From positions 2,181,628-2,245,627 of the forward strand of contig OZ037771.1 in assembly GCA_964035545.1 (NCBI GenBank): a stretch of 64,000 bases of DNA. The letters are read 5' to 3'. Made by a program: the position numbers and the translations under genes. Shown here one piece after another: positions 28,259-54,203 of this stretch. The notes under the pieces are model-generated. The model ran no database searches, was not told where the DNA came from, and worked only from the letters and a program-made list of their open reading frames with translations. Positions within the stretch are counted from its first letter, which is position 1. Each line of letters begins with the position of its first letter. This DNA comes from Bugula neritina (lineage: Eukaryota; Animalia; Bryozoa).

Positions 28259-31200
28259 ATGGATGCGAGGCATCGAGGTAGAGGCAGCGGCTATGATATT
28301 AATTATTCTCTAGATAATCATAATGAGTACGGATTGAAATCTGCAGCTAGTGTTCCCTTATCAAGGCAATCTTATCACGGAGTAGAGGAAGAGACTGGAG
28401 GAAGTAGTAACGGCAGCGAGTCACTGATCAGACATAGCGATACTCAGTTTGACTCAAGCGCTGACGAGACTGTCATACCTTCTATGATAGGTGAGACCAA
28501 TAGTCAGCGATATATTAGCAGCACTTCTATTGGAGCCGTCGGCTGTTTTGATCCTGAGTCGTCCCCGAAATCTCTGCACAGCCGGTTGACAAGGCGCAGT
28601 ATAGACACGGACCAGTGCGGCACCCTCTACGAGGTCACCCTACAAACAGAGCAAGACCTAGAATATAGCAAAAGCAACAACGTCATGGCTGAGCCTGCTG
28701 TTGCTTCTGCTGCTGAAAACAGCATTGAACAATGTGACGAAAGTCAGCGTCTTGTCAGCAGTCCAGCTCCACCAGAGACTTCGAAAGTAGAAGAAGCTGG
28801 AGTTATACAAAGGACAAAAGGTAAGATGTTGAGTGTTTATATGTGGCCAGTAACTTATTTTTGTCACACGGTTTAGTGTAGAGGTAATTGACCTTCTTGA
28901 GATGGTGTTTCATGAGCCAACTTAGTGCAAAGTCTTGCACACATAACAGTAACGCATTGAGTAGGTATAGCTGAGTGGTTTGTGCAGGTTTCTTAAGTAC
29001 GGGCACTATTTAGGGTCTAAGATAAGAGAGTTTTGTGTGAATTTAGCAGTTGTACAAAGTCTCTACTCTAGTATATTGAGCCCTCAGTTGAGTTCAATAT
29101 ACACACTAAATCAAGAATCGTAAATCATATAAAGTCACTCCATTACTGTCAAAGTTTCATACAAAGGCATTACTTCATCAAGTTTGCCAATAAGTGTATC
29201 TTATTGCCAATTTTAAACTGTGAATCACAGAGCACTGTTTCAATTGATCTTTTACTAAGCATAGTGTTATGCTGGCATCTAATATGAGGAGGTGGGGGGC
29301 ATAAGACAGCCATCAGTGTAGGCTCCAGCTTTTGCCAAATTTTTCTCCACTTGCTATAAACATATTTTACAATACAGTTTATGTAACTCATTCTTCTCTT
29401 TAAGGTGCATTGTTTCATTAAGTTAAACAGTATTCAGTAATGTAAAAAAATTGTTTACAGCGTAAACATTGCATTCAAAAATTTGATTACTTCTAATAAA
29501 TGCAAATACTGTCTTTATAATTACATCACTTGTATAACCTGTAAATATTTTCCTTCATAGGCTACTAGTTATTGAGAATTAATGGTTAGTTAACTAGCTA
29601 GTGCTCAAAATATTAGCATTTATTTAAAGTATTTGAAGAATGTGCATAACAAATTCTTCTATTAGTGACTCACCCATCTGGATTGTAGCAACATGATTTA
29701 TCTACACATGTAGATGTATATGTACACATGTGCATAGTATGTGCATGTACATAATATACAGATTTATATGTAAGTTTAAATGTGTAAACACACATGTATA
29801 CATTTAAATGTAGATATAAGCTAAAGGAATAAGTTATAAAGCTCATTAAGTTAGTTAGATTCATAAGATAAATTGAAGCATGGTCTGCAGATATAGCTGG
29901 TTTTGTTGAAGTTGTGTATACAGGTTGTGTTCTGCACTTTTTAATGGCTATCAGAACATAAATTAGTTTTCTATTCTCTATTCAACACATTATTGACTCT
30001 TATACTACTATAAGTTTATATCCAGTCCTCTAATACTGGTAATGTAAACTATTTGCGCAAACCATAATTATAAGAGGGAAACAGAAGTGTGAATCAATGA
30101 ATTCAATTTATTATATGTCTGCAAGTATAGCAATCCAGAGAAAGCCTTTGTTCGTACACTGAGAAGGGGGCAGTCTTTGAGTTTAAATCATTAACATGTG
30201 TATATCTTCTAATCAAAATGAATAAATGAAACTCCATGTCTATAATATATTTTCCTACATGAAAACTGGCCATAAACTTTAAGCTGACTAGTGAATATTA
30301 ATAAATGCTTTAAATAGCTGTTGAGTGTATTTTCTAAAATTATCTCCAGTGCATTATCTTTCATGTACATGGTCTATTTCAACACAGGATACATTTTATC
30401 AGCTTAGAATAGTGAATAAAGACTTATTTCTAAGTGTAACTTACACATATATAGTTGATTACGTGAACATTTATAAATTTAGTGATAACCATTAGTGTCT
30501 CACATTTTATGTTGTACTTACCGTGTACAGTAGGTTACTTCCAATGTCATGCAATAGTATACTATTATCATAATGAGCATGAACTGAAATCAACTGAATT
30601 AAATATAATTGTTGCAAATTGCAATAGCTTTTTCAATCATTTATAAGTTGAAAAAGTTTAGCCGATACCGAGTTGAAAGAAAGCAATTAAAAGTGTGCGA
30701 AATTTTCAAGATTTACAATATTATCTTGGAAAATTTGAACTAAATCAAAAATTATAATATTGGCATAATGTTTATTAATAATGGTTTGATGCATGTAGAA
30801 ATGACATCCAGTTTTAACTATAGGTCTCACTGTTTGCTCTTTTTTCAACTCTCACTATAAACTTAAACTCAATCATATATAACTATGCAAAATAATATTC
30901 ACATCTGCACACTTGCAAACACATGTAGACAGCTATTTATAAAATAGAAGAATCAAATAGTAATTTAGTGACATTTCAAGTAGTATTTACTCAATATATT
31001 GATTTTATGAAATATACATTAGCATTAAATTCTCAACTTCAACACTATAATAGCTAAAGTATATATAAAACCCCTTATTGACTGTCACTTATATCTCTAA
31101 CCATTATAACCCATTCTATGAAGTACTTGTCGCTGCACCTACTTCATTATAAGTAAGTAAATAATCAAGTAGCACTCAGTTCTGTCCAACTTGCCTCCTA

Positions 31201-34200
31201 ATATGTCATAACATTATGACATTTTATATAAAAATGTTCTTTACTAAATATATGTCCGTTTTTCCATCTCTCACCTCCATTTTATTACCATTATTTTCCA
31301 CTTGTATAATATATATTCATACTTCATTGACAACTCAGCACATTAAGCATTATAATCAGAATTGCTGGCAATAAAATAGAAAATAGCTAGTAAATTCAAT
31401 ATATTTGATTAAAATTCAAATGGAAATTACAATAAATTTCTTTTTTACAATTAAATAAAATACTATTATGTTTATTTTCATCTGTTTGATGCTGTCTGTG
31501 TTAGCATTTAACTGTTTTGGTAAAATACTGTTTTCTTAATTACCAATAATTAGTTCCTTTGCCTGGTGTATATTATGTAACATCAGCACTGCTAGTTTAA
31601 CTATGGTGTAACTATGACTGGCATAACTATAATATAACTATAACTAGGATAAATAACTGTATTATATAGTGCAACTATATGTACATTATTATTAGTAAAT
31701 ATTTTGAATATTTTAGCTCATTGTAAATACATATCTGTGAATTGCTTGTTAAATAGCAAGTTAAAGACACTACTCAAAAGTATTTCAAATCAGCATTATT
31801 GACACATTTAGCATCATCTGAACTTAAAAGTCTTATATCGAAATGTGGTCAGCAGTTACCGAGCCTTAATGTTGTATGATCTCTTGAACTGACCCTAAAC
31901 TGGGTGCGTGGTCTACTTTTTCAACTAGAGGTGGAAGCTAGTGGGAGTTGTATTATCAAATTTAGCAGCCTTCAAGAAAAAAAGTGTTAATTATTTGCAT
32001 AATCAGGCTACTATGCTATACTATGCTACTGAGGGCAGCAATTTTCAATTTTGCAGACAGCTCAGGTGCAAATGAGAGTTATCTCCCCAAAAATACTGTA
32101 CAATTATCTTGGAAAATGTTGGATTAGTGCTACAGGTAATACTTGTTTCCATTATATGCTGTGTATTTTATATACCATACACTTAATAATACAATTCAAA
32201 TCATACTTTGATAAAACTTTATGACTCAATATATAGTCAGCATTTAAACTTTTTCTAGTTAAATATAATAATATAATAATATAATATGATAATACCTACA
32301 GCTATATGTAATAATAGTCATCTTAACAGCTATGTGGAACAGATATGCAACATGCTGAAGACTTTATCAAATACAATTTTATATAAATGAATGCAGAACT
32401 TTTGGAACCAATAGATATATTATATGTAAATCCAAGGCTTTTAAACTTTCAAAATAACACACCAACTAATTCCTATTTTTAAATAAGCTGTAAAGTCTTT
32501 ATATTTCACTTATAACTATCTATAAGAACAAGCTATCCAATGCGCTTACTTCATATTTATATTATAACAGTAATTGGAGTTGTCTTGCTAACTTATTTCA
32601 AACGCTGCATGAGTTTTCAACTAAATACAAGACTAGATATTAATATCTCATAATTTTGCTTTAAACATCCTTACTATTATATACTTACATCTGCTCAATC
32701 ATTAAAACTAAGACGTATTCCAACAGCAAGTAAAACTTACACATGTAATAATGTACATTCGTACAGTCTATAAATTGCTACTGATAACCTGCGTATAAAT
32801 ATACAATAGGTTACTATAACTATACGTAAGGTTACACATTATGTTGTACATTAGGATATCAAGAAAGCATAATATATAAATGAACAAGCGATACATTGTT
32901 AGGCTCTTCGCAACACATTATTAGCTAGTAAACTGCATTTAATGGCTACCCTCATCAACTCTATTACATCCATTATAAAACTGCGATACTACATCATGTT
33001 GGCTCTATGTGCCACTCAAGTTGTTGTGAAGTTTTTCTGTCGGCACTTTGCTATTCAGCTGTACTACTAGAACAAAGTTGTCTCTTTTATTCTGACTTTG
33101 ATTGCTGCTGCTGCCGTTACTATGGTCATGCGTTCGTACGACTTTAAGAGATGTAAGTAGACATTTTTAAAAATTAAATAAGATTTAGTACTAAGACTAA
33201 GAAATTAGCTCAGTTTACTGTCACAGTACTGTTTCTTACATCTGTCATAACTTAAAATTAGTTTGCATGCAGTGACTGTGGTAAATATGTGTGCGATGTA
33301 GCCAATAGTAGGGCAGTGTTGGTGGTTTGTTATGACTCATAATTATTATGTTAGTCGTGAATCTCATTCACTCCAAGGTGTAATGCGTGGGAGAACCTGA
33401 CAACGTCTCTCTATCAACCAGTAGGATAAAAATGCGTTTTGACTCAACACTTTTATATAATAACTTTTTTTTACATATTATCAGCATTTAATAGCAGTTG
33501 TTATCTTACAATGCATACAGTTTGATAAAACATTTATAAATTATAAACTTTTTCCCACCCACGTACACAAGACAAAGGTGGTGAAGGCGATGCACCTATA
33601 TAAACATTTTTAAAAATATTTTCGGTATTTTAAACTAAATAATATTTGTTCAACAATATATTTGTTATGGCAATGCTGAAATAATGGTGCTAGATTAACG
33701 CCAGTGAAAATAATAAATATTTACTGTAAATCTCCTATAGCAAGTCACACTGCCTAAGTAAGCCTATAGCTCACATGCAGCCTTGTAGTATAATGCTCAC
33801 TGCATTTATTTGCAATAAATAATGTATTCATTAACCTACATATTACTATTATACAGCTTCTTAAGACTACAGCTCTGTTATTATTTTATCATTTGTCTGC
33901 AATACTTCAACTTATACAAGCATCTAAGAAACTGTGTTTTGTTACAATCTGCATCAGTATTCACATGGACTTGACTTTTCTTTGTAAAGCTTAAATACAA
34001 TCACCATCTATAAAAGTTTTACAATATCTTTCAAAGTACAGAAATTAGAAGTTTTTATGCAGACTGAAAAAGTTAAATTGGCCATAGTTAATAATTTTTC
34101 CAATATATATATAAATATATATATATGAAGAGTTATAATTTTTGTACTCAAAAAGTATTAAACTTGCTGCCACTCCTTAAGTTGTATGAACCATTCATCA

Positions 34201-37200
34201 TATGAGCTACTAATGCATTTAAACAAGTAAAATTATGAGTTACTAGAGAAGCAATTGATATACATTGTAATTTGTAATTGTAGCTACTGGCGTAAGGCTA
34301 ATAATTATGGTAAGAACTGATTTGGTTATCTGGCAGTATAAATTAATACTGAGCACATAACTCCAAATAAAATTGTTGCTAATATTTGAATTCTTATATT
34401 ATTACTACTTGATGTGTCAATTATATACAATATATTGATATGCACTCTACAACTTATATTTAAATTATAAATATAAAATCAACAGTAAATAAATATCTTA
34501 TATGCAGCTATTTTTCTAAAGTAGTCAATATTCTTTTAAAATGATGAATTAAACATAAAACAAATGTAAACACATACCTCGTGCTATAAGCTATATAAAA
34601 TTATTTTATTCTATAAAGTAGAAACAAAGTTACTGTTATCTCACCTTTGCCTTCCCAGTGTGGTTTTTCATCTTTCATCACATTGTCACTTACAAATTCC
34701 AACAACAATACAAATCTGGCCTAAAATATGCAACAATCAAATCAAGAAACAACAGAATTAAAGTCAATGTTGTTATTAAACAGAGTTTTGTGTACTTTGC
34801 TGTTTCTTTGGCTAAATTTGTTAGATTGTTTTTCTTAATGCCAACTATAATCTCTTCACTTGTTGATTTAGAGTCATCTTTAGTAAAATTTACAGTAAAG
34901 TTACAAAACTTGCAGCTGTAGTCTAATGGTTAGTCTTAGAGTAATGTGGGCTTAGTAAGCACAAGGTCATTAGTTCAAATCTTGGTAAAAGCCATTAGCG
35001 ATTTTAGGATGGGCATTTGGTTATCACATCAGAATATCTTTGATATCAGAAGTATGTTGTGTATCAATCTCAGTTTGAGTGATGGAGACATGGCCACAGG
35101 TCGAAACAGGTCGAGGCCGATTTTGGTTGGCTTGAAGCAGCTATAGGTTGAACTCAGATCGAGTTCAGACCAATAAGAGATGAACTATAACTCGTGTACC
35201 AAAGAGGTAAAAAAAGTAGGCTGTCGGAGAAAACTATGCATCATAATAAAAAATGTAAAGACAGCCAACTCTCTGCTCAGACTAGCTGTAGTTGAACTGA
35301 GATAAATATGAGAGAAACTAATGAAAGAAAGTGCTTCTCATAATTACCTGCTAATAGCAAAGTGGTTGGAATTTGCATATATTATATATGGAGACAACTT
35401 ATAGCCAATGAGCTAAATTGCCTTGGCTTTAACAGATTTTCTGCACACAAAATAGGGAAGCAGCCAGCTACTAGTATAGCAATCTTAGCCATGAGATATA
35501 AACAATATAGTCTAACATAAACTAGTTCTCCGGTTACTCTAAACATTTATGAGCAAGTGAAATACCAGATTACTCTGCTATACAACTTTCCACTTACTCT
35601 TCGCAATCATTAAGTACCCATAATGGTTTACAAAAAATCTCCAGATGTTAAAAGATTTGGTTTGACCCGGGAGTAGTAAACCGCAATAATTAATCGCCAT
35701 GGATACAAATGATGCGTCTACCAGCAAGTTCTGGTTAAAATTATGAATTGTGGAAGTCGTACAAATTTTATATGCTAAGAAGAAATTGGTGTGAGCAGAC
35801 ATGTGGAAACATACAAAGATGTCTCATCACACGTTCATAGGCAATCAGCAAGAGTTAGCTCAGTACGAAGATAGGGCTTTAATGAACGAGGACGCTAAGG
35901 GAACTGATGGTACGTTGAATGTTGCAACTTTCTGTGAACACTCTTCATTAAAAAGTGTACCAAGTTTTCTATTGTTGCAGTTTTGCTGGTAACAAATCCT
36001 AAACTCTATCAATTTGGTTGGTTTCAACAAATTCGAGACAGTAGAATTGTGGGATTTTATTTTTGTTTAAAAATGCACCAATGTAAAAATATATCAAGAG
36101 TTAATTGCAACAGTAGTAGTATCTAGCATTCAGTACTGGGCCTAGAGATATTGCAGTGCGCAGTAGTAGTTGAAATCAGTCGCAAGTGGTGATGGTAATA
36201 GTAGAATGTTGCTCAAGTAAAATACATGGCAACAATGCGACAGTATCAGATAGCATATGTATGGCATAACTGTCAACCAATCATGCATGAGGTCAAAGGG
36301 TAGTGTTATAACAGTTTCAGTGGATTCCACACGCATTTTTCTATACACTGTCACCTCGAAAATAGCATAGAAGCAATTAATGCAGTGGGAGTTTATTTCT
36401 AAAACTAATTTGTACGACTAAAAGTACTACTATAACTAATAGTTCTACTACTTTTAATACTGCTATTTCTCGGCCAGTAATCAGTACAAGGCTCAGCTCA
36501 CACCGCCCACATTCACACTCATATTGATCCTGAATCTGATATTTTGACTCTTCAGAAGTACTAGTAGCTGCATTCGCTCACCATGCCTAGTCACGTTGGT
36601 AAGTTAATGTTGTGAGTTCAACTTACTGTTTTTTATAGAGGAGTAATTCGAAGATTCACTGCTAAAACTGTTCAATGCGAAATATTAATAAATAGTAACA
36701 AGTATACATTAAAATTTAAATATCAAGTGTAATATGGTAAAGCTGTTTACTGTTAATGTTACAGATATAGTATAATACTAATACTAATAGTAATAGCGTT
36801 AGATTAAGATATATTTTTATCAGTGAGCTGATAGGGAAAGGCTTCTGATTTTGGATTATCAATACCATTATTATCAACAACATGAACATCATATCTTATT
36901 GATATGTTTAGTAGTCGCTGGGAAATACTAATTTGTTTCTTGTTTTATTTCTTTCCAAAGATATTTTATGATAAATATAATTCCTAAATAGAATTATTCA
37001 TTCATTGATAGTAGAGAATTATAGATTCTGTCTGCATAATATGTCTAGTTGTTATTAAATGCTGCTTTGGCAGCTCACATTGGGCTTCTATTGGCTCTCT
37101 ATTGGTTGAGTTATGCTCCATCTTACTTGATTTACTTACTTGATTTACTACTTGATTTACTTACTTTACTTACTTGCTTTACTTGATCAGTGCTTGTTTG

Positions 37201-40200
37201 AGGACATTAGTTTTAGTACTTCCTTTTAATACTTTCTTTCAAATTAAACATCAGGAAACTGAGCTGCATTTATTAGAATATAATAGCAAAATATTTCAAT
37301 AGAAATCATTGCCAACTTGACTCAAGCTTTTACTGAGATAAGACACTAAGTTCCCTGTTTAACTTTATATAGCAAGCACTGAGAGTAAAAATGTTATCTA
37401 AGTTTCTATTTTTGTGGTAGTGCAGGCTTTATTTTCTATATAAAGTAGATTACAACCACTGGTTTCTATAAACACCAAACAAACATTGGGTGTAGTAGCT
37501 ATGGTAAACTTTCTCTCTACCAGTATAATATTTTCAATAATCATGACTAGGCTTTGATTTCTTTATTTTTGGCAATGTTTCCCAACTTTTCGTTGCTCTA
37601 ATCAATGCAAAAAACAACTTTCAACTGCAATAGCGGGATAATATCGGAGTAACATTGCATGATGCATACCATTCTGATATATCATAAAGTGGTACTAGTG
37701 GGATACTCAACTATAGGCAATAAACTGAAGCTGTTGGAAATAATGACTGAATGCCTGATTGACCGTAGATGATCGTAATATTTGATCTACATGGTAATTA
37801 TAGCCCACATAATTATATATAAAGTTAGCATAGATTTACTAGCAACCATGCAAGTAGCTACGGCCATTATTGTTCAAGGATATTGCTGTTTAGATACTGC
37901 ACTTTGTACTGCTGCCAGCCTTGTGATTAGACTTCTGTGACAGCAACCACCATTGTTTATCTTCTTGTTTATAGAAGCAAAACATTTAATGCAACCTTTT
38001 CAGCTACTTCCTTCAACATATCAACAATGTGGACTACATTCAACTGCTCGCTGTTATTTCTTATTGTCTGGCTAGCTTTAGAGCTGCTGGTTTTGCCAAG
38101 ACTCCAGCAAGTTACAGCTACAATGCTGCCGCATATTCCACTCTCCACTCCAAAGCATAGCAACTGCTTTGCTCTGTAAAATGTTTTTGCTGAAGTTTTG
38201 GTTGTGTTTAAGTTTATACTAGGCAATATTTCATTGAACTGTTGATATGGAATGTGAATAGCTAGTAGACTTATTATTTCTCTTTACTGTGTTGACTTCT
38301 GTGTGAATATATCATCTAAACTTCAGCTTATTAGGAGGCTGCTGTTGCTGCTGCCTTGCCATTAGTTGTTATATATGCACTCTGCAACATCATCTTAATG
38401 TACACAGTCACTCTTGTGATTATGATTGTTCTTGTCATCACTGTACGAATCTACCATAACAGTTCAGATTTCCCAAAACTTTTTTCTTGCTCTACTTTAA
38501 ATCTGTAATCAAAAAGTTACATGGGAAAATCTTTACTTTTTTAGCAATTAACATTTAATATATGCAAGTTGGCATCTCCCTTTTGACTACCTTTCAAATC
38601 CCATAGCCTGTGTTCTATGCAATACTGTATGACTTATGCTAAGCAGCTAGTTGAAATGGTATTTATTTATATTTAGACAACATTTTATCTCTTCTCAATG
38701 ATAAATAAACAGCAGTTTTATTTATTTATTCTAAAGATGACTAAAAGTCATTGCTGATACGCTGTCAAATATGTCTCCAGTACATACCTCTGTGATTGAA
38801 TTACTACCCCTGATCTCTACTTACAATGCTAATAAATGTGCTGGAGAAACTGTTATATATTGGTAGGAGTTGTGGATCTGGTAACTAGTTATATTGAGGC
38901 TGGTTATTAACTCCCCCCTCACTTTTTACTCAGCTGAGGTAGGGGGTACTTAGGCAAAGCAGAGGGGCACTCAGGCAAGTTAGCAGGGCCACTGTCTTTA
39001 TAGGACAGCCACAGTATCATGCAGCACAATGCATCACACCTAGTGTGGTGACCAGGTGGGGTGGGTAGTATAGGTGGGGTCAGCTGATGTGTGTGCTAGC
39101 AAGTTATATTGAAGGTTAGTAGATTAGTAAGTTAGTAAGTCATGCATTAAGAGTATAGTAGATAGTGCTTCATGCTGATAGATTGTATAAACAATAGGTT
39201 GTGGGTTCGCAGTAAGTATAGTAACTAATAAATAAATAGTAAGTAACAAGTAAGCAGTTAGTAACAAGTAGTAAGTCAGTAAGTATAAGTAAGTCAGTAA
39301 GGAGTAACTAATAAGTAAGTATAGCAACTAATAAATAAGAAGTAAGCAGTAAGTAAGTAAGTAAGTAACAATAAGTAAGTAACAAGGAAGTAGTAAGTAA
39401 CAAGCAGTAAGTGAGTAAGTATAAGTAGTAAGTAACAAGTAAATGAGTAGCTGCTGCTGCACAAGCTTCTGTGGCCCACATCTAACATGTCGTCAGCCAG
39501 TGCATTCTTGTGGTCGACCTTTTGACCTGAGCAATGAATTTTGTACCAGTGCAATAGTAGGACTGTTTCTAATATTTTGGTGACTTCATCCAGTATAATA
39601 TAACATCAATGGCTTTATAGAGTTCGGCTGAGTTGGCATTGCTGAGTTCGTTCAACACATAGCCTTTGAGTTTAGTTTAACAGATAACCTTAAAGTTAAT
39701 TTCAACACATATAGCTTCAAAGTTCAACTCAACAGATAGCCTTAGCTCTTAAAGAACAGTTCAAAATTATAACCTTGAAAGATAATTCTATAGAGTTCAA
39801 CTCAACAAAAGCTGTACTGCTCGACAGCCAATTGCTAAAATTATTAGACTGAAGAATGAAATCTAGAGCTGTCGTGATATCAATATGCCACAGTTTTGTT
39901 TTAAAGCTAATTCAACTATATATTCTACCGCATGCACCACGCATCTTATCGGAGGCTGTAACAGTGTAGCTGCAGCAACACTTGCATTTGTGAATATCCT
40001 GCCTGCTGCAAGCTAATATGCAGTATAAAGCTGGTAGCAGCAAGTTTTGAACTACTTCATGGAATGGTGATGGCAGCCATTGAACGGTTTCCAAAAAAAA
40101 TTAGCTATCAGCAAAATTAACAAACTTGGCATGTCATCCGTGTTGTCATCATGTGATCATAAGTCATGTGACTGCCAAACTGCAGCACGTGACATCAGCG

Positions 40201-43200
40201 TTTTTCCTCGTATTTTCTACAGCATATATATGCTATTGCTTATGCAGCAACCACCACCACAAACTACACTAAGAAGTCAATTATGCTGCAGAAGCTAAAA
40301 CACTTTGTAAGGTTTGTGTGGTAATAATATTTTACACTCCATCAGATATAGTTCTGCTCAAAGATCATATATCATAATCCTACACTTGTACAATCTTTGA
40401 GAGATTATCTAACCCCACCTCACTGCTAATTAGTTCAATAGGAACATTAGTTTCAGCTAATTATAAGACTGTTTGCTGCCAAACTACAGGCAGCAAACTT
40501 AAAGGGCAAATGAGCTGCTAACTATATAGTTGATATCACATACCAGGCAGGTTTTGTGCTGTACTATTATAAGACATACTGACAGACTGTCACTCACAAT
40601 GGCTAGACTGTCTCTCCACCAAGTTTCGCCAGCTACTAACATGGACTGCTGCAACTGCAGCAAGTGTAAAGATTGTTGCTTAACGTTTTGCAGCTGTAAG
40701 TAAAGTTTTGTTTACTTTTTTAGTAAGTTATATGCACGTTTCAACAGCACTGTAAGTTAAATTGCTTTAAGGTAAATTGATGTAAGCTAAATTGTTGTAA
40801 GTTAAATTGCTGTAAATTAAATTGATGTAAGTTAAATTACTGTAAGTTGAGTTACTGTAAGCTAAATTGATGTAAGTTAAATTGCTGTAAGTTCAATTGC
40901 TGTTAGTTGAACTTCTGTAAGTTAGATTTCGTAAGTACTGTAGATCTCAATTTGAATAAAAACATAACCAGATCTTGTCAATCATTCAGCTGCCAGTGCA
41001 GTTATTTTAAAAACACTCACAGAAAGAAAACAGGCTGCCAATGTGCTGACATCAATGCTGACCCTGAGTTTTTAACTGTTTTGTTTTTGCTGACCTTAGC
41101 CACTTCGTTATCTGTAGCCACTATTGTTCAGATTGTGACTTTGGATCCTCTGAAAGACTGGATGACTCAATTGTAGTGGTAACCTGGGAAAATCTCTAGA
41201 CTTTAGAACATACAAGTATATAGAACATACAATAATTGTGACCTGGCACCACAAAACAAGGGATGTATATAAAATGTTGAAAACCTATTTATTACTATGG
41301 GGTGATAGAGCAGACTTTTTCAAACATTTTGCACTTTAATTGAAGTCTCTAGCATAAATAGAACTCGAGATATCAGTATTTAAAAACTTTAACGTTTTTA
41401 GAATTTCTAAATTACTGTTTCGAGAAAATCGCGTTTAAAGTTGGCAACTCTAGAATAAGTTGAAAATTATTTGTTTACAATTTACAAGCCTTAGCAACGG
41501 GTTTTTGTATAAAAGCAATAGTGACAAATTTGGTATCAAAATAATTGTGAAAGTTTGGGCTTTCTGTTAAACTAAATTTCATGCTGCCTCAACATGTTAA
41601 TTAGGTCAAATATGGCCGCCAAACTTTTTGTCTAATTTATTTGTCAATTTGCTTTTTACTTTGTTTAATGGTTGAAAGGTTTGACAATTCCAGCAAACAA
41701 GAGGATGTTTCAGCAAGTTTGTGTGTTGAAATATTTAAGTTAGACATCCAAGTCAGCAGGAAGTCATATAAAACAAAATGGCAGCTGCTTCCTGTTATAC
41801 ATTGAATATCTTCCTCTCCTCTAATATATTGTGTAATATATCAAACTGCAGCTATTGAGCTGTGCTGTTTCATAATTATTGCTTAATGAGTAGAACACTT
41901 ATGAAAAAATTATTTGACTATCATGAGATCATGCGAGGTTCATTCATAAATATCTTTATAATCTGTAACGGCAACTAAATTTAGCAATTGATTTGGCTGA
42001 GATGTTGAAAATATAAACATAAAATCAGCTATTAGAACTTTTGAGTTTTATTAGGCATTAATATTCACATTTAAAACATTAAATACATTATTTTAAAAAA
42101 CCAATTAAATGCAGTAAAAAATCCAGCCTGGATACAACCATTATGCTTGAATTAACTCTTATCAAGAAAAGAAATTAGGTAGCTTCTACGGCTTTTGCAA
42201 AGAAGGCACTTATCATCTTTCTACTTCCTTGGTCTTCATAATATGAGTTTACGGAGTATGGACACATAACATCATGTATGTGGCAAAAGCTTCATCACTA
42301 TCATCAGCTGATTTTCTAGCAATTATAGATGCTGCTACTTGACATCCATCCTGCCAATCTACCCACTTATTGTCTATTCCAGAGCTGAAAGTACAATGTT
42401 GACTTTTTTTAAATAACAAAAGGAAACGGTATAGCTTGATTAGAAATTATACCCAGTTATATTATAAAAATTTAGTGGGCTAAACACTCTTGTGGTACTA
42501 TTATGGCAGCAGTTAATTGTGATCCTGCATTTCATTAACTTTTAAATTTATTGATTTCAACAGAACAATTTGAATTAAAAAAATTCTTGATAATTTTCAA
42601 GCATATCATTAAAAGACTGCAAACCTTTTTATGAATGAAATAAGCAGAAGCCATAACCTTGCAAGCCAAAATTCGGAGTGTCTACATTAGAAGTATTAGA
42701 TTGATAGGTAGTAGAGTTGTGTAGGTATAAGTCTTCACTCTAATGCCCTCACAAGTCCACTTTCTAAAATGTACAGAATATCGGATTATTCTATATTTAC
42801 ATAGTATTATCAGTAAAATTACACATTATGCAGTTGAATATCTAGCATATCTGCAATTGGCAATTTTGAAGCAATGTCTTTAGATAGGCATTTAATTGAG
42901 TAAAAAAGCTAGCCAAGTGCAACTGAATCTATTAAAGACTTTTACTATAAAATCAATTTGAATTCAATAAATTACTTTAAAATATGAATACATTTTTGCT
43001 CATCTTATAAAAAAATTAAAAAGTTTAGACTATTTATGCATTCAGTTAGTGTTACTACTCACTAAATAAGACTAAAAGTAACTTACTGAAAAACTAAGTC
43101 AGTCAACTATAGAAGCACGAACTCGCATTAATATTTCATCATTATACTCATTTACATTTAGTCACATTTATCATTTCAATTTGGTTATAGGTGATGCTTT

Positions 43201-46200
43201 TATCAATATAAATATGATTATCAATTGAGTTTTGACAGTAACACTAACTGTAAGCCTGCATAATGTGATAAAGATTTTATCATTATATTTTAAATCAAAC
43301 TTTGAGCTAATTTAAAAATCACAAAAGGAACCGGTAGTTTGACTAGTACTAGTAGGCCTAATGTTAATACTAATAGTAATAGTGATTAGTTACTGTGTTG
43401 AAAAAATCTAAGACAGAGGCTAAAAGTTACTAAGACTAAGAGTAAGTCTAATGTAAATTGAAATATTAACTATAGAATAAATCAATAATTATAATACTAT
43501 CAGTATGAGTATCAAGTTTTAAGAGCAAAGGCGAAACTCAGAGTCAGACTCAAATACTAATACAGTAATACTAATAGTAATAGTGAATTTATAATTATTA
43601 ATTACTTATACTTATACTATTAGTATTAGTATTAATATTTATATTAATCATTAATGAGCTACATTTGGTTTTACTACCAAATACCAGTATCAGTAGATCA
43701 TGAATAATACTCACTATGATTATCATTATGAGTAACCGTACCTTAAACTGTGAGTCATAGTGAGAGTCATTTAAATAGTTACTAGTAGTAGTAGTAGTAT
43801 AGAATAAGAATAGAATAGACCAAGACATACTCCTAGTCCTAGTGATAGTATAAATATTATTAAATTGATAACTACAAATAATCCTGGCTGCAATTCTAAG
43901 TTAGTAGCGTAAAACTAAATGATTGTTTTGAGTATAATTACCTGTATTGTTGTGGTTCTCAAGCTTGAACGCTAAAGATAAAGATTAAGTTCAGCATTTA
44001 TCACCAAAGGGCAAAACAGCTCAGTAACTTAAAAGCTAACTTTGGATGGAACACGATGAAAAACTAAAACTAGCCTTCGATTTTAAATATGATGCTTCTG
44101 ACAATACGAAGAAAGAGGTGTAAACTAAATTTCTTTGATAAAAAATAAATTTGCAAGATCTCACGCTATGAAAATGACTAAAATTGTCTTCTTTCTTTAA
44201 TTGATAACTTCGCAATTTTTTCATCATTTAAAAAATTGAAAGCCTTAGTTACCAACTTTAAATGCAATTTTAGAGCTGAAGGAATCATCAAATGCTCACG
44301 AAAGTATGATTTTTGAAATCCTTGGATTTTTTTGTATTAGAAAAGTCTAAAATCTAAAAATTGGAAATTAATTTCAAACTTAAGTATTTCTAAATTAAAC
44401 CTTCATTTACTACACTTTATAAACGCCGCCACATCCCCGGTTTTGTCGCGACTGGTCACAATTATAGAATACACAAGTGTAGAACATACATTTACATATT
44501 CTAGTATAGATTTTAGACTATACTATAGATTGTAAGATATGAAATATAGATTATAAAGTAGAAGTTATAGAATTTTGAATATAAATATTATAGGTTTAAA
44601 GTACTGAGTGAACATATAGTATAATGATTATAAACTATATACACTAGAATAGGTACAATGTAAATTATAGTGTCTAGATTATAGAATATAAAAGATATGA
44701 TGATATAATCTATATTTTACTAAAATAAGTTATGTTCTGTAATAAGGTCTTTTTGGTTATGAGGGAAGGAAACACCAATACTAAACTTATTAGCTCAAAC
44801 ATTTAGCATTTTATTCCTTAAGAATTTTAAAAAATAGGTTATTCACTATAAAACTATTAGCCGAAATAATTAAAAGAATATAATATGGAAAAATGAGAAT
44901 AAATAAAAAATATAGATCTATTTAAATTCTAGATAATTTAGAAATTAGTAGAATATTTATCCTATAAACTTAATGATGCAAACAGAGAATATTATAACCA
45001 TGAATATTTTACTAGTTTTCATATTGTGGTTATGTAAACACTATTTGTTGCTCTTTATATAACACCACTATAATATTTACTTTCTCTGTAACACATGCTA
45101 TATCAGGTGTCTCCCATATCTGGCCTTGACATCTTGAACTCATTTATCTCAATATCCTGCATATTGTTAATAAAAGACTGCACTTTGTGTATAATAAAAT
45201 AAAGTTGGTTCCCTTGACTTCTATAGAACCTAGCTATTTCTACCGCAGCACATTTTCTCTAGTTTTTGAGATTTGTTTTCTCTTGTGCTTCATGCAACTT
45301 GGTAGTGCTTTATGTTTTTTATGTTACAGCCTATTATAGAGCAATGCAAGGCTCCCTAATAATATCTACTTTAATGTATTGACTTAATATCAAGGCTAGT
45401 GCATTCGTTATACAAGCATAACAATCCATTCTTTTGATTAGTCCATCTCAATGATCCTATTGATTATGTGGAGCACTCAGTGATGCTGTATTCATACATT
45501 CAATGCTATTTATTCAACAACTCTAATTTTATTAATCGAGCCACTTGTCTCTGTTTTACTTGTATAGAAAATATTTCTCGTAGCCTAAGTTTATGCACAT
45601 AAATATTATCTGTACTAGCGGTGTTGCCAGTACTCCCCAACCGACAGGAATTGATTATCTTAGGCTAACTCTTGAATGCTTACTAACTAAACAGTTGAGC
45701 ATTTGGTGTCTGGATGTTAAGCTAATGTAGATGGAAGTGGTTATGCATAGCATTAGGTAGATGCAGGGCTAGGCTGGCTATTACTTTACAACTGCAATTT
45801 CCACTACTGATTGTTGATTTAAGGAATTGATACTATTCGTTGGAATGGTGGACGTTCACGGTAAGGAATGTTGTGTACTAGTAACTTATCTTTTGTATTG
45901 CCTACTAAGTACACAGCAGTGCACTAATTACATAGTTCTTCTTTTTAGTTTAGTCTGTAAACGGCTTTTTGTTTTTATATGATTTTCTACTCCTTTAAAA
46001 GTTTAGCATGAGATTTAGAATTTAGCATAAAGTGAATAAAGTGAATTGGGCAGCTTACTGTTATCTTTATTGAAACCCAAATACAATACCTAGTTTAAGA
46101 TTTTCAGTGCTAAAACACTTCTTGAAAACTATATTTCTAAGTTCAGGAATTTCTTTTGCTAATTTCATACCATAGGCCGCAGTCATGTATTATAACATAT

Positions 46201-49200
46201 GGTGTGTTGAATAACCATTATAACAATAGTTAACTTCACAGAATTAGTAGGACTAGTTACATTATGTCACTGTTAGTAAGTTGCTGTACGACCACGTGTA
46301 CTATATAATGTATGAACATACATTACCTGATGTTGTACAGCTACCTGAATTCTAAATGGCCTTTGAAATATTTCACTGAATAGTAGGCCTAGTCACTGGG
46401 GTTTGGGCTTTAGGATAATTTCTTTGCTTTAAAAGCTGCAGCACTGTTCAAAAACCAAAAAAGCAATACAAAGACTCAGTAAGGTGTTGAAAAGTGACAG
46501 CAGGTGTCACTCAACATGTGCCTGAGTCTGTATTTCATTTAGCAACAACTGCTAGATGTATGATTAAGATATGTCATCTTTCTAGAGCAGTGTTTCTTAG
46601 TTTATTTTAGCCTGCGAATTTCTTTCATCCATCCAAAAGAAACATCTTATAACTTTACAACAGGAATTGTAAACTGATTATGTTTCTTTGTACAAACATT
46701 CCCCAATTCACATTTCTTCAAAGGTGCACAGTAAACACTGTCCTGAAGTTTATTATCCTAGCATTTCACCTCTTTCATTAGATTTATGCCCTAAGGGTTA
46801 CGTAATGCTTTGTTTTTAGGCATTTAACACATTAACCAAAAGATTTGCTGCATTCAATTTTCGACTTGATCTGAGCATTGAAAACTAGTACATAGCTAGC
46901 TGTGGTTAGAGGCAGCAAATATTTGCTGCCGATTGTAGCTAATTGTTAACACGTTGAGTAGCTGCTCTAACTCATCATATATTAGCTGCTAAACTTGTTA
47001 TATCTTTATCACAGATTTGATTACTTTGCAGTATTAGCAGCACATCATAGATGATAGATAAGTGTATAGACACTAGTTATACTATTACTGAGTATAATAT
47101 ACTCAACTATACTTATTCCAACTGCAACGGCCCATTTCTTGTGTACAATTTATTCACATTCATATATGGGTGGTTTTTTCACTCACTCAAATCTAACTAG
47201 AAGGTAAACCTCACTACCATAGCTCTTGAAGTTTGTAGTATAAGGGCAATGCTTTAACTCTAGTTTTATTTATTTACACATCAACTTGGTGTGTGACTAA
47301 CAGAGTTATCTATAGTTTAGTTTACACAGTAAACAGGTAAATATATCCACCATGTTGCTGATAGGGATCACTGTTTACTGTAGATGACTAAGTGCTAGCT
47401 TTCTACCAGAGTTGAGTTGAATGCTACTCAGTGTGATAATTCATTCAAATTTAATTCATAAAACCTGTTCATGTCTTTTCAAACTTCTTGGCTATTGAAA
47501 TTAGCTTATCTTTCATAACCTAAATTCTATGAGAACAAATGCAGAATAGTGCCAATCATAACACTACTTACTACTCGCTCTAATCCATTACTTATCCTTC
47601 AACCAGATTCTATATGATCAGAAGTTCAGAAGTTTGTATAGCTCAGATTTCTTTATTTTGTAGCTGACTACAGGGTGGGTAGCTGCTACCACTGCCTAAT
47701 GAATGTGCCACCAGGAAGTCTTACAGCATGGATTCTAGTCTTTATCTTTACCATAGGCTGGGCTACTACCACCTGGCTCTCTCTTGACTACGGTAAAGAT
47801 CTGCTGAAATGGGTTCAGACGTAAGTATATAAAACCAGACAGATCAAAATCTGTAACTGCACTAAAGCAGTTTTTAAATCATGAAAGTAACTAGTAACTA
47901 GTATTATACCTAAGGCAAAACTCAAACTAGCTGAGTAATGAAAGAAAACAGTGAATCATATTCAAAGTGATCTTGTTTAAATCGGAGGCTTGAATAGAGG
48001 AGGTAACTCTTTGAGTGCTGGCCCATTGCTATTTGAAAGAGTAGCTATTACAACAATGCAGGTGTTAATGGTTGAAATGGTATCCTACTGTATTAACTGG
48101 TTGCTATTTTAGTCTTTCACTGTAGTAAAACTTATAAAATGAACCAAAGTTATACTAAACTGTATAATATGGGACCAAAACTTGTACTTTTAGTTTCTTT
48201 GCCTTTTCAGTTTTGTTTAAAAACTGAATGATAAGTGAAGAGTCAACATAATCATGAGATATTGAAGTAGTCAGTTTTGATATTTACACATTTAGTTGCA
48301 TCTCAGAAAGATGTACTTTAGTGTCGTAATATTATTATTGAGGTTTAGATACACATGCTGTATGCAGTTGTTTTCAACCAACTACAATTTAGAATTTGCT
48401 TGCAGAGAAAGCCAAAATATAAACATATTTTTATTTTCTTTAGCTTTTACTTTTGACCTCTATCTTCAACCTTTAACCTGTGCCATTCACGGGCTTTCCA
48501 TGTACCGATCTCAGATCGATCTCGCTGAGATCGATCTGAGAAATGTGCTCAGATCGATCGTTTTTCCATGAGAGTGTCAGATCGATCTCGCGAAGTTGCC
48601 TCCTCTTAAGTGAAGGATACTTTAAAAGTATAATTTGTTCACCTATTTGAGTGATTAAAGCTACTACTGTTGAAAACAAGATGGTAGTAGTCTAAAATTT
48701 AATTCCAGCTATAAAATATACGCAGCAAAGCTTTCAGTGTATGGTAATTTGGCCAATTTAAAATAACTAGTTTTAATTTTTTAGCTTGACAGCTTATATA
48801 AAATTAATGGCTGTCTTGCAGATTATTAATAAACTTACAGGACTGTTAGGCTTAAAATTACAAAGAAAATAACTAATGAAACTAAGTTTTGATAGTCATT
48901 TAAATTCAATTTAAATTTTCCCATTTTTTTTACTTTCTACTGCATATAATTGAGTTTTCTTAATCATTGTACTGCGAGTCAAAGTTTTGGCATCTGAAAA
49001 AGTGGCTATCATGATTATTTAATACTTTGCTTAGTAATTATCAATAAGTTATCATTTTTATTAGCAGACAACATTGTAGCGCGCAGTCTTTTTCTACTTC
49101 TCGGATCGATCTGGCGTCTTTCCATGGTCTTATTGACATGAGATCGATCTGAGTTCGAGCTCCACAGACCGACCAGCTCAGATCGACGGAGATCGATCTT

Positions 49201-52200
49201 TAGCGTCTTTCCATGAATCGATCTCGCTAAGATCGATCTGAGATCGGTACATGGAAAGCCGGTGATTGACTTCTACAGTTGACCTCTACCGCTGACCTGC
49301 AAGAATTATATGTAAAAATTGGCAACACATTCATTCCTGCCCCTCTTTTATATTGTGCCTGATTTTCTCGAGCAGTTCGAACTTGACTTATCAAATGTTT
49401 GTACTAAAACCTGCCTGGCAATTTTTTTCTATAAAAAATGTTTTAATTTTACCAAAAATACGACTTTTCTAAAAAAAGAGAACAAACAATAAACAAGCAT
49501 GTGTGTTTGGTGAAGCACTGTGTAATATTTCAGCCAGTGCTTTGTGTTCTACAGGGAAGAGTCACTCACATACGAGGAGATTGCGCTGATAACCATCGCC
49601 ATAGCAACTGCACTAATTACTGTAGTGTTTCTAATAATTGCCACCTTCTCCTCTCATAAGATGAGTAGATACTCATTTGCGAGCAGCAAAAAGAACAAGT
49701 TTGGATATTGTCTGTCTGTTACAGTAAGTGTCACAACAAAACCATGTAACAGTTGCTCTATCGTTGTTTGTATTCAGTGCATTTATAATAGAATTTTGCA
49801 TACGTGAGAAATTTGTGTTTAATGTTATTTCAACAACAAAGTCATTTTGTGTGATAATTTTATTTTTATAGGCATATCTTTTAATTAATAACTTTAAAAC
49901 CGGTATTTTAAATAGCAAGAAAGAAGGCAATATTGTCACTGCACCCACTTTTACAAAGCATTTTAATGATGTTTTAGTAAATACTAAATGTAAGTAAAAC
50001 TTATAAACTTACAGAAAAGTAAGCAGTCAGCAACAACTGCCAGGCCACAACCTTATGTCGGCAGCGAGATTTAATTGCTGCCTGAAGTGCCAATAACAAT
50101 CAGCTAAAAGGGATAATTCTTAGAAAGTTGAATTGAATTATTGGCAGTGAGTGGCATCTAAAACAAATTACTCCACCAATATACCCCTGTGGGAGTTGCT
50201 GGCTCGATATTCATTCAATTGATGGCACAATGTTTACATTGCACAAGTCAACTGATCCCATCTCTGATTTATATTTTCTTAGTCTTCTAATATTGGCGTT
50301 TTGAAAATGAACCCGTGCTTCCCAATAACTTAACTTCCATAATCAAAAAGATCCTGTAAGTTTGAAAATAATAATAATGATGATGGTAATAACGGAAGAT
50401 GTATTAAAATAATTTAGTAATTAATATACTTTTTGGTATTTTCTGTAATTGTCTTCCCTTTTTAAAATGATTTGGTATTTCTATGAGTTGCCTACCTTTT
50501 TGCAATGAGTTTAAGTTATAGACTTCTTCATTGTATGTGTAAGTATCTACTCAGTCACACTGAGCATAAATTATTCACTATTTCAAGTTATTTATTTTTC
50601 TATTTACTTCAATATTTTTATAGCTTTTAATATTGCCACCTATTTCAGGTCATTGTCCTCTCATTCGTGTGCGTTCTGTTCTGGACATGCATCATTGCAC
50701 TCACCATGTTGCCCATTGCTGTACTCTCCATCGCTCATCTGCTCGTTCAATCAGACTCTGTTTCTTGCCTCCACCTTCAGAGTTATGGTGAGTCATATTT
50801 TACACCAAAATGTGTTTCTCCGAAACCGTTTGTAGTTTGAGTAAGTGCCTAGTAATGTAGTTATTGTGTTATGTATTTGTAGATAACACACTTGAGAATG
50901 GTTTACTACATATAAAATAATTATTGACAATGTTTTCTACCCAACTTTTGTCTGCTGATCTTCAATAGTTTGCTAGTAAATTATTCAAATAGAAATACCC
51001 AGTGGGTTTATTTTTTACAATAGTACTTTCGAAATTGTTTAATAGACATAATATACATTATTCTAATGAGGCAAGTTTATATAAAATAGACTTGGATTTC
51101 TATACACTAGATCATATAAATCTGCAGTTATATACCAAAGCATACTCTATCTACATCACAGGAGTAAAAATGGGTGATGCTCAAGGTCAAATTACTTCTA
51201 CCTCTGCCACACCAGCAACTTTATTCAGTTCTACTACTACTATGGCCAATACTAGTAAATTTGGTGTTGTAATTATTATATATTGTAGCTACATTTTGTG
51301 TTGCAACATGTTGATAGCCATATAGCTTAATTAAATATTAAGCATGAAATAATAACTATTTTAAGTCATCATGTGTTGTTAATGTTTTTTGTTGTTTGGC
51401 ATGTTGTAAGGATTGAATGATTATATGGCGTTTGAACTCGTGCATAGTTTTGACAAACATAATTAGTCAAAATTTCAATTAATTAATAAGAGAAGACAAT
51501 TTCTGTTCATGTTGTAATTTTCTCATCTCAAATAATGATTTCCATCTAACTAGTGGGTCTTCAGTATTTAATGTCTATGATTTCTTAATATAAATTTGAG
51601 ATGAATATTTTCTTCAAATCTGATGCCATCTTAACCTCGTATTTGCTATCGATGCTCAAATACATACTTATATTAATCAACTTTCATCTTATTCAGGCGT
51701 GGGGATAAATCCCAACATGACTGGCATAACAAACACTAGTCTAGCAAATGATAAGTTGACATGTGGAGACAGTCTGGATATGTGGATGGATGATGCATGG
51801 AGAGTATTTGTACCGCTACTCATTAGCTTATCCTTTGCTATAGCTATTGAGGGCTGTATGGTAAGAAGGCTGTTGCATATTCCAAATACTTAATCTGCTT
51901 TTAGTGTGGGTATTGGTTGGCATAATTTTATAGAAAAACTGCTGTTGAACCTTTTAGATGGTTTACTAGCCTTAATCTTATGTTTTGAGTAAAATTTTGC
52001 ATTCTAATGGAATCAGCACTTTTGTGACAAAGTTGTCTTCTCCTTGACTGAAGAAATTCCAAAGTATTAGGAGTTGCTATACTATGACAGTAAGCTAATT
52101 GTTAGTCATAATGTTCTAATTTTTGACAGCTTGGGTTCTTAGTGGCAGCGAGCAGCAATGCACGCCACTTGAAAGAGCGGATGGAGTACATGAACGAGCC

Positions 52201-52300
52201 TTATTCATACAGCACAGAAAACCTCAACGGCAACGTAAAGGCAACCTCTGCACACGATAAAACTCAGACTAACAATAACCAAAGTGATACTCAGATATGA
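28259..52300 (+). CDS. Proteolipid protein family (M6/GPM6/DM20-like) tetraspan. Common exons 47664-47820, 49555-49723, 50649-50787, (51162-51254), 51697-51860, 52130-52300. Longest first exon 28259-28820
   Basis: CYHCLMNVPPGSLTAWILV (cf. C..CL..VPYASL.A.IL), four hydrophobic segments, FGYCLS before TM3, CLHLQSYG (cf. CLDLRQFG) and FLVAASSNARHLKE (cf. LM.LSAN.A..KD). All junctions are GT-AG and in frame. The link between 28259-28820 and the common exons is inferred from phase. Confidence 0.85.
32072..32135 (+). CDS. Alternative N-terminal exon of the M6-like gene (MRVISPKILYNYLGKCWISAT)
   Basis: Acceptor tttgcag at 32056, ATG at 32072, then 21 codons + 1 nt and the donor cag|gtaata (phase 1). 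Confidence 0.55.
33122..33152 (+). CDS. Alternative N-terminal exon of the M6-like gene (MVMRSYDFKR)
   Basis: ATG, 10 codons + 1 nt, donor gtaagt (phase 1). Confidence 0.6.
34915..35215 (+). mobile_element. Possible degenerate tRNA-derived SINE
   Basis: A-box-like TAGTCTAATGG (about 34918) and B-box-like GTTCAAATC (about 34973) at tRNA-like spacing, followed by a GC-richer body and an A-rich end. It does not fold as a clean tRNA. Confidence 0.4.
36583..36598 (+). CDS. Alternative N-terminal exon of the M6-like gene (MPSHV)
   Basis: caccATG Kozak context, 5 codons + 1 nt, donor G|gtaagt (phase 1). Confidence 0.65.
39220..39450. repeat. Low-complexity (GTAA/GTAAGTA) repeat
   Basis: Visible agtaagta iterations. 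Confidence 0.85.
39620..39810. repeat. Degenerate tandem repeat of about 23 bp (gagttcaactcaacagatagcct)
   Basis: Several diverged copies. Confidence 0.55.
40599..40695 (+). CDS. Alternative Cys-rich N-terminal exon of the M6-like gene (MARLSLHQVSPATN-MDCCNCSKCKDCCLTFCS)
   Basis: In-frame ATGs at 40599 and 40641; donor T|gtaagt (phase 1). Confidence 0.65.
40752..40936. repeat. 15-bp tandem repeat (tgtaagttaaattgc), about 12 copies
   Basis: Directly visible, just downstream of the donor at 40696. Confidence 0.92.
41237..44460. mobile_element. About 3.2-kb degenerate DNA transposon with imperfect TIRs of about 30 bp (superfamily unassigned)
   Basis: The left end tgtgacctggcaccacaaaacaagggatgt matches the reverse complement of the right end, tgtgaccagtcgcgacaaaaccggggatgt. 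Both flanks carry the same tagaacatacaagt-like motif. No intact transposase was seen. Confidence 0.7.
45845..45860 (+). CDS. Alternative N-terminal exon of the M6-like gene (MVDVH)
   Basis: ATG, 5 codons + 1 nt, donor G|gtaagg (phase 1). This is the closest candidate to the common exon at 47664. Confidence 0.6.
48488..49264. mobile_element. 777-bp non-autonomous TIR element (MITE) with CAC...GTG termini and an ATT target-site duplication
   Basis: The TIR cacSggctttccatgtaccgatctcagatcgatct is at both ends, with ATT on both flanks. There are subterminal AGATCGATCT palindromes. Confidence 0.9.
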
Positions 52301-54203
52301 AATGAAGAAACCTCGTGGGAATACTTGTGTATAACTGTAGATGGTAGACACAACTCCCAACCTAATTTCAGTCATTGTAGAGACAACTCCCAAAGCAGTT
52401 GTAGTGTACATAAGTACCAGTCTGGTAAAAGAGAAGACAACTCATTACTAGTTTATGCCTTTTAGAACATGCTCAGCAATACCTGCAAGCACCTGCCAGC
52501 ACTGTGCATGACTGTCATGGCATAGACTGCAATACACTATCATTAGTAGCATTTATATTGTAGCATTCATCACTCAGCTTATAAATTCAAACACTGAAAA
52601 TAATTTTGCTTTTAGCTTTACTATTTTATTTTGTTGTATTAGATTTTACGTTTGTTATTAGTAATTATACACTCTGGTTTATTCTCATGGGGGTTGAAAA
52701 TTTGGTCTTTTATGTTTTATTTCCTTAAAACATACGTTACACTATGTATTGTACAGAGTGACAATCACTTATTCATGGTTCATTTCAAATATTTATTACT
52801 AGAAGTGTAATATTGCTAACTACTTCAATTATTCAGCTTCAATCTTAGATGTAATTGCGGTTACTGTAACAGATATAGTCTGAGTCATAATAAGTATACT
52901 TACTCTACTATTTTTATATTAGTCACTGAAACATTACTTGCATTTTATATATTTTGCTGATGTATTCCTTGCCGCTGGGATATAATATAGCCTACATTTA
53001 AGAGTTAACAGCACATGTTTATTGTCACTATATAGTATATTGTGAAAATGTGCTTTCTATATTTAATGTTATTTTCTATGTACAATACTAACGTTTATTT
53101 TACAAGTTTATATTTTTGCGATAATGTTGAAAGAATAAATGTAACATGCATAAAAGACAATTTTGGAAAAAAAATGAGAATAGAAGCATTTACAGATATG
53201 CAAATTTTAAACATGCTGATGTTTAGCTGGAATCATAAAATACACTGGTCTACATCAAATTTTAATTCAAAAGGTAAATTTGTATATAATTCATACTAAA
53301 TCTTTATATTATTGGCAATCTATTATGATTTGTAACTTAAAGGTTATGCTTAATATACATAATTAGGCCATCAATTGAAATGCTTGAACCAGATTTCTAT
53401 ATATTTACATTTTCAACCATATTTCCACTATACTGGAGCAGTTACGTCTCTAAGAAAGAGCAACTTCTTGAAAAGCTACAATTTCCTGAAATTCTGTTTA
53501 AAAAATTCTTCAATAACACTGAAAAACATTTTAATTAGAATTAAACGGATTCCCACTATTCTTATAATTTTATTTGAAATAAAATGATTGGGTGTCATAC
53601 TCGACATCGCATATCATTGCCAGCAGAATTGTAGGTTCTTTTACAGAGTGGCGCATTGCGAGAGATTACAAATCAGTATATTATATTGGTCTTGTAAAAC
53701 TACAGTTACATGATTGTTATGAATACCAGTAAACAGTGACTAGTTGAAAAGCTCAAAACATGGGCTCAGCAAGACACCATGTGGGATGTAAAAAGGGATT
53801 TAGATGATTATTTGATATAATATATATACAAGTAGGTGACAACCTAGAACTGATCCAACTAAATCCTTTATGGAAACAAATAGCGAGTAAATCTACAATA
53901 TATTATAAATAATATAAACGGGCAAAAATAAGCTCTCTTTAATTTTAAAAATAAATACTTTTAAGAACACCATAAATATTGAGTGCTCTTTATTGATCTA
54001 TTGAATAACGATAAAATAAAACATTTTCTTTTTATTAGTAAAACTACCAGAACAAGTCAGGATAGTTTCTTCAATTTATGTGAAAACTGGCGGATTATGA
54101 CTTCACCAGTACGCGTGACCATCAATCAGTGACATCATCAGCAAGTGCTGTATTTCACATAAGTTAGAGCTCATTAACAATAAATTAGAAAATACAAAAT
54201 TCG

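Follow-up and report, generated by a model that had tools for sequence, protein, structure and literature searches.

A divergent M6/proteolipid-family tetraspan gene that probably joins at least four alternative first exons to one constant body

The window analysed in this study is a stretch of 64,000 nucleotides of AT-rich eukaryotic DNA (G+C about 33%), C7:2181628-2245627, in a 216-Mb assembly. The locus at positions 28259-52300 of its + strand is quite likely one gene for a divergent tetraspan protein of the M6/proteolipid (PLP) family, in which alternative first exons are spliced to one constant body. The window was compared with contigs of related species (L022, L024, L026 and L032) and with two spliced transcripts of a relative (L033 and L038). 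The constant body comprises five exons, which are listed below with the phases of their boundaries and with the predicted transmembrane segments (TM1 to TM4) that they encode.

47664-47820, + strand: constant exon A, entered in phase 1 and left in phase 2; juxtamembrane Cys pair and TM1
49555-49723, + strand: constant exon B, left in phase 0; TM2 and cytoplasmic loop
50649-50787, + strand: constant exon C, left in phase 1; TM3, then the first part of the large outer loop
51697-51860, + strand: constant exon D, left in phase 0; outer loop with N-glycosylation motifs and one Cys, followed by TM4
52130-52300, + strand: constant exon E; cytoplasmic tail, with the stop codon at 52298-52300

Exon A is 65-75% identical to exon A of L022 and L024, and 69% identical over the tblastn match of the L033 product, a match that extends 7 bases past the acceptor. 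The same 273-residue L033 product, from a natural spliced transcript, is 44-75% identical to the window exons and maps onto all five of them, which confirms the exon set. At 47663/47664, the acceptor is in phase 1, and it is exactly there that conservation with three related species and with a paralog from the same genome sets in. The Cys-x-x-Cys pair that precedes TM1 in exon A does not vary among the window, L022, L024, L032, L036 and the paralog. Proteins of the Myelin_PLP family have four membrane helices, of whose two outer loops the first is small and the second large, and both termini lie in the cytoplasm. In the window gene, four hydrophobic stretches were read from the sequence of exons A-D, and a single-sequence AlphaFold model has long helices at matching places, at a mean predicted local distance difference test (pLDDT) score of only 51.8. 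The predicted protein ends in Thr-Gln-Ile (52289-52297), as does the ortholog encoded by L033, and this ending fits a class I PDZ-binding C-terminus.

The first-pass annotation, made from the window sequence, had named this locus an M6/proteolipid gene, and the assignment proved right on the basis of the natural transcript product of the relative and an exon-by-exon comparison of the window exons. L033 was found by scanning metagenome contigs with a degenerate DNA pattern that represents the conserved beginning of exon A, which yielded 6 loci. Its product (L033:227-1045) matched PF01275 (Myelin_PLP) with 29.2 bits, above the Pfam gathering cut-off of 23.8 bits, with an E-value of 1e-6 and over profile positions 3-228 of 231, and its top Atlas clusters were all Myelin_PLP. 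Two further genes of the same genome served for the comparison of exon structure.

C7:11516951-11518880 (L001-L003): canonical M6/PLP gene, detected by PF01275; four outer-loop Cys, phase-1 acceptor just before the Cys motif
C2:23642818-23652100 (L013-L016), near 23.65 Mb: paralog of the window gene, with the same exon plan and the same position of the phase-1 acceptor

The intron phases of the window gene, 1-2-0-1-0, are those of the canonical M6 gene (C7:11.5 Mb), and the last intron lies at the same aligned residue in both. An hhalign comparison of exon E with the last exon of the canonical gene gave an E-value of 2.5e-5; BLASTP matches between the window exons and the canonical exons were weak, with a best E-value of 0.003. 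Because the L033 product passes the PF01275 threshold and the intron phases and last intron position are shared with canonical M6, the window gene belongs to the M6/PLP family, as a divergent member.

Searches with other queries returned less. A six-frame PF01275 search of the whole genome found the canonical M6 gene, 9.3 Mb away, and did not find the window gene. No match was obtained in the Atlas search with exon B, and the sole return of the representative search with exon A was a repetitive junk protein. The protein search with exon D returned only genomic contigs of a close relative, covering 49929-56167 and therefore outside the first-exon region. These contigs (L029 and L030), from a close sister species in public samples, are 87-89% identical to the window at the DNA level through exons and introns, which makes that species suited to fine-scale footprinting.

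Upstream of exon A, the first-pass annotation had listed six ATG-initiated segments and a weaker seventh, each ending at a donor after 3n+1 bases, the length that fits the phase-1 acceptor at 47664. All seven exist as written: each starts with ATG, stays open and has 3n+1 bases before a GT. The description of the donors as strong holds for the five of GTAAG type (segments beginning at 28259, 33122, 36583, 40599 and 45845) and not for 32072 (gtaata) or 39087 (gttagt). Four of the seven, designated E1a to E1d, are well-supported candidate first exons, judged by phase-1 counterparts in collinear order in related genomes (a slash marks the exon end).

28259-28820, + strand: E1a, 187 codons plus G, donor G/gtaaga; long Ser/acid-rich head
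33122-33152, + strand: E1b, 10 codons plus T, donor T/gtaagt
40599-40695, + strand: E1c, 32 codons plus T, donor T/gtaagt; Cys-rich head with 8 Cys
45845-45860, + strand: E1d, 5 codons plus G, donor G/gtaagg; proximal short head

For E1a, 10 homologs were found with 44-57% identity and invariant short motifs. The similarity stops at the donor, and the homologous end is a phase-1 G/gt at the same place in L022, L024 and L026; the homolog lies about 16 kb upstream of exon A in L022 and about 13 kb upstream in L024. Protein searches with E1a returned only genomic read-through open reading frames and no spliced product, and no Pfam family was matched. An exon of this size could instead be part of a separate upstream gene, as would fit its distance of 19 kb from exon A, the lack of a Pfam family and the fact that no transcript joins it to exon A. 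We consider this quite improbable, as its side, strand and phase-1 G/gt donor upstream of exon A are kept in L022 and L024, the gene next upstream, GUF1, has a terminal LepA_C exon of its own at 24955, and no later conserved exon that could make another gene with 28259-28820, nor any further conserved coding block, was found between E1a and exon A. Moreover, a long Ser-rich first exon that ends in phase 1 is also present in the C2 paralog, where it lies 5.9 kb before exon A; its similarity to E1a is weak (E-value 0.008).

The three shorter exons were also found in relatives. E1b has a collinear counterpart at L022 4875-4905, of the same 31-base length and with 7 of 10 residues identical, in which four conserved codons differ solely at synonymous sites; its same-length score was 35 against a null maximum of 15 (0/65). 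Homologs of E1c, at L022 13702-13810, L032 296-404 and L024 9696-9801, share the ATG, the richness in Cys, phase 1, the gtaagt donor and a collinear position. Since their conservation begins at the ATG at 40599, E1c is taken to start there, and the alternative start at 40641 that had been offered for this exon is dropped. The counterparts of E1d, at L022 15676-15691 and L032 2081-2096, likewise have 16 coding bases, with 3 of 5 residues identical and the donor G/gtaaga (same-length null, 1/65), and relatives of six residues lie 512 bases before exon A in L024, L034 and L037 and 148 bases before it in L036.

The order E1a, E1b, E1c, E1d, exon A is kept in L022, the order E1a, E1c, E1d, exon A in L024, and E1c and E1d are kept in L032. 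No AG stands directly before the ATG of E1b, E1c or E1d in the window, which speaks against their use as internal exons, and no Rfam family was found in 26-54 kb. The remaining three of the seven segments are listed below.

36583-36598, + strand: candidate first exon, 5 codons plus G, donor G/gtaagt; suggestive only
32072-32135, + strand: unsupported candidate, donor gtaata
39087-39114, + strand: unsupported candidate, donor gttagt; adjoins an (AGTA)n array

The best local match of 36583 in L022 is at 9491, where the Met-Pro first exon of transcript L038 has its ATG, within the collinear interval. The alignment score was not above that of shuffles, and the match is thus at most suggestive of a first exon at 36583-36598; by blastn and local DNA alignment, the divergence between the window and L022 is too high for 16-base exons to be judged. 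For 32072-32135 and 39087-39114, no counterpart was found in L022 or L024. Conservation of the mini-exons in relatives therefore extends to 33122, 40599 and 45845, with 32072, 36583 and 39087 lacking a significant counterpart, and the count of at least six N-terminal exons is reduced to four that are well supported and one that is suggestive, leaving two unsupported. Another ATG-initiated phase-1 segment (43716-43749; Met-Ile at its start, donor T/gtgagt) lies between E1c and E1d, in the interval where the relative has the transcript-proven Met-Ile first exon of L033.

As spliced RNA shows, the relative splices at least two first exons to one acceptor. Bases 1-233, 234-391 and 391-573 of L033 match L022 14428-14660, 17143-17300 and 17963-18146 at 98-100% identity, so that L022 14428-14660 is joined to exon A. 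In L038, a first exon at L022 9304-9497 (Met-Pro plus G) is joined to the same exon A, and the encoded protein, which falls in the 90% cluster of the L033 product, differs from it at residues 2 and 3 only. In both joins, the identity to the genome contig is 100%. Both first exons have 7 coding bases (ATG plus four) and end in phase 1. They are poorly conserved even when compared with L032, and lack of conservation therefore does not exclude a first exon. The proposed design of variable first exons on a constant body is thus supported by four first exons conserved in order, phase and peptide and by two transcripts of a relative that share an acceptor, at a smaller number of exons than the six first claimed.

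The two transcripts also bear on where translation begins. An in-frame ATG is present in exon A (the Met of Leu-Met-Asn-Val), and if it were the start codon, the upstream exons would be non-coding leaders and their phase would be irrelevant. This is highly improbable, because three species and the paralog conserve the residues that precede this Met, with the Cys pair among them, but not the Met itself, and because in both natural transcripts translation starts in the first exon, with no ATG upstream of that start.

A 44-base non-coding block at L022 14300-14343 and L032 772-816 is identical at 43 of 44 positions, whereas exon A is only 81% identical between the same two species. Transcript L033 has its 5' end about 85 bases downstream of the block, which is a possible promoter element; no copy of it was found in the window.

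Several observations weigh against one M6/PLP-family gene with a set of alternative first exons. With regard to the family, Pfam returned no Myelin_PLP match for single window exons. The Myelin_PLP family has two conserved Cys before TM1 and four outer-loop Cys that form two disulfides (PMC3438117), and the outer loop here has two cysteines where the family has four; the orthologs and the paralog, like the window gene, have two in the large outer loop, and canonical M6 of the same genome has four. With regard to the first exons, the number of phase-1 ATG-to-donor segments is no higher than chance. In 28821-47663, the + strand contains 55 GT[AG]AG sites, with 3, 8 and 5 ATG-open segments in phases 0, 1 and 2, and the - strand contains 42 such sites, with 15, 10 and 9. 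E1b was found in one other species only (L022) and was not found in L024, and the similarity that points to E1d spans 5-6 residues. Furthermore, the spliced RNA comes from the relative and not from the species of the window, and its transcripts L033 and L038 use other, poorly conserved first exons; no transcript from any species ties E1a, E1b, E1c or E1d to exon A.

In another explanation, only one or two first exons (e.g., 45845 and 28259) are real and the others are either chance occurrences or conserved as regulatory elements or small upstream open reading frames. The chance-level number of segments, the lack of significant counterparts for 32072, 36583 and 39087, and the restriction of E1b to a single other species favour it. 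On the other hand, synonymous changes have left the length and phase of E1b and 7 of its 10 residues intact, the ATG, Cys pattern and gtaagt donor of E1c are kept in four species, and the relative uses at least two first exons in RNA, which together make this explanation unlikely. It is by their cross-species conservation that four segments rise above the chance level, and a gene with probably at least four alternative first exons, which would provide different cytoplasmic heads, remains the preferred reading.

An excess of GTAAGT on the + strand (33 against 13) is due to the (AGTA)n array at 39211-39450 and a minisatellite at 40750-40936. The minisatellite has a 15-base unit in 12.5 copies and begins 55 bases past the E1c donor; its unit resembles that donor, which results in about 12 GTAAGT-like sites in a row. 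It is absent from the same place in L022 and L024.

Among the neighbouring sequences, the + strand upstream of the gene carries a GUF1/LepA-type GTPase gene at 18300-24955 (GTP_EFTU, EFG_C and LepA_C domains). GUF1 also precedes the E1a homolog in L026, which indicates conserved synteny. At about 4.2-8.3 kb, the window contains a class 3 lipase gene. Near the C2 paralog, a transposon-like inverted duplicate lies farther upstream, at 23635-23638 kb.

In the proposed mechanism, several promoters would be distributed along the 19 kb that precede exon A, and transcription would start from one of them, each having its own first exon consisting of a 5' untranslated region, an ATG and 3n+1 coding bases, and every first exon would be spliced to the single phase-1 acceptor at 47664. 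The outcome would be one membrane core (the Cys pair, four helices, a glycosylated outer loop and a cytoplasmic tail) bearing different cytoplasmic N-terminal heads: a Ser/acid-rich head of 187 residues with conserved short motifs from E1a, and heads of 10, 32 and 5 residues from E1b, E1c and E1d. The predicted products, with lengths summed from exon lengths only, would have 271 (E1d), 276 (E1b), 298 (E1c) and 453 (E1a) residues. The eight extra cysteines of E1c are likely to be additional palmitoylation sites, next to the palmitoylated cluster of the family, and further first exons, such as 36583, may exist. The use of each first exon in this species, the separateness of the promoters and the role of the heads are inferred.

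Exon 1 of PLP1 ends after the ATG plus one base, and PLP1 thus shares a phase-1 first intron with the window gene. We know of no long Ser/acid-rich or Cys-rich head in vertebrate GPM6A, GPM6B or PLP1. The variable N-terminus design itself is not new and is already known in flies and vertebrates. In PLP family genes, it is common for transcript variants to arise from separate promoters and from alternative first coding exons (PMC3438117), and in the mouse, the exon 1.1 variant of Plp1 carries 12 additional residues (PMC9875078). The alternative N-termini that the first-pass annotation had named as known for GPM6A/B and Drosophila M6 are described in the literature (PMC3438117; bioRxiv 10.1101/2023.09.04.556077). 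Vertebrate GPM6A, GPM6B and PLP1 resemble the window gene in obtaining alternative N-termini through alternative start sites or first exons (PMC3438117), although fewer N-terminal variants have been described for them than are proposed here.

Drosophila M6, the only PLP-family gene of the fly, is like the window gene a tetraspan with a juxtamembrane Cys cluster, which is palmitoylated in the fly, and a role of palmitoylation in fly M6 has been described (bioRxiv 10.1101/2023.09.04.556077). It has two promoters and alternative first coding exons, with isoforms that differ only in the cytoplasmic N-terminus (PMC3438117; bioRxiv 10.1101/2023.09.04.556077), and six annotated isoforms differ in this way (bioRxiv 10.1101/2023.09.04.556077). 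Unlike Drosophila M6, the window gene is a divergent paralog that shares its genome with a canonical M6 gene, has two rather than four outer-loop Cys, carries a conserved 187-residue head and a Cys-rich head, and has its first exons spread over 19 kb. In clustered protocadherins and UGT1A, too, one constant exon set is joined to several first exons, which presumably each have a promoter of their own. However, the variable exons of protocadherins and UGT1A are paralogous copies that encode the main functional domain, whereas those of the window gene are short, mutually unrelated and encode only a cytoplasmic head.

Tentatively, the first-exon bank may be an old set of modules, kept across distant relatives, that switches the tetraspan core between differently anchored or regulated states, with E1c as a heavily palmitoylatable Cys-rich head, E1a as a long, phospho-regulated Ser/acid-rich head whose short motifs are invariant, and E1b and E1d as near-headless forms. 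Extra, fast-evolving first exons, down to 7 coding bases in length, might then add lineage-specific promoters.

These results correct the model of a divergent M6-like tetraspan gene in an invertebrate whose genome is poorly annotated; first exons with 7 to 31 coding bases would escape automatic annotation. They extend the N-terminal isoform design of PLP/M6 to a divergent paralog group outside flies and vertebrates, and the conserved Cys-rich and Ser/acid-rich heads offer handles on how the N-terminus directs the targeting of M6 to membrane domains.

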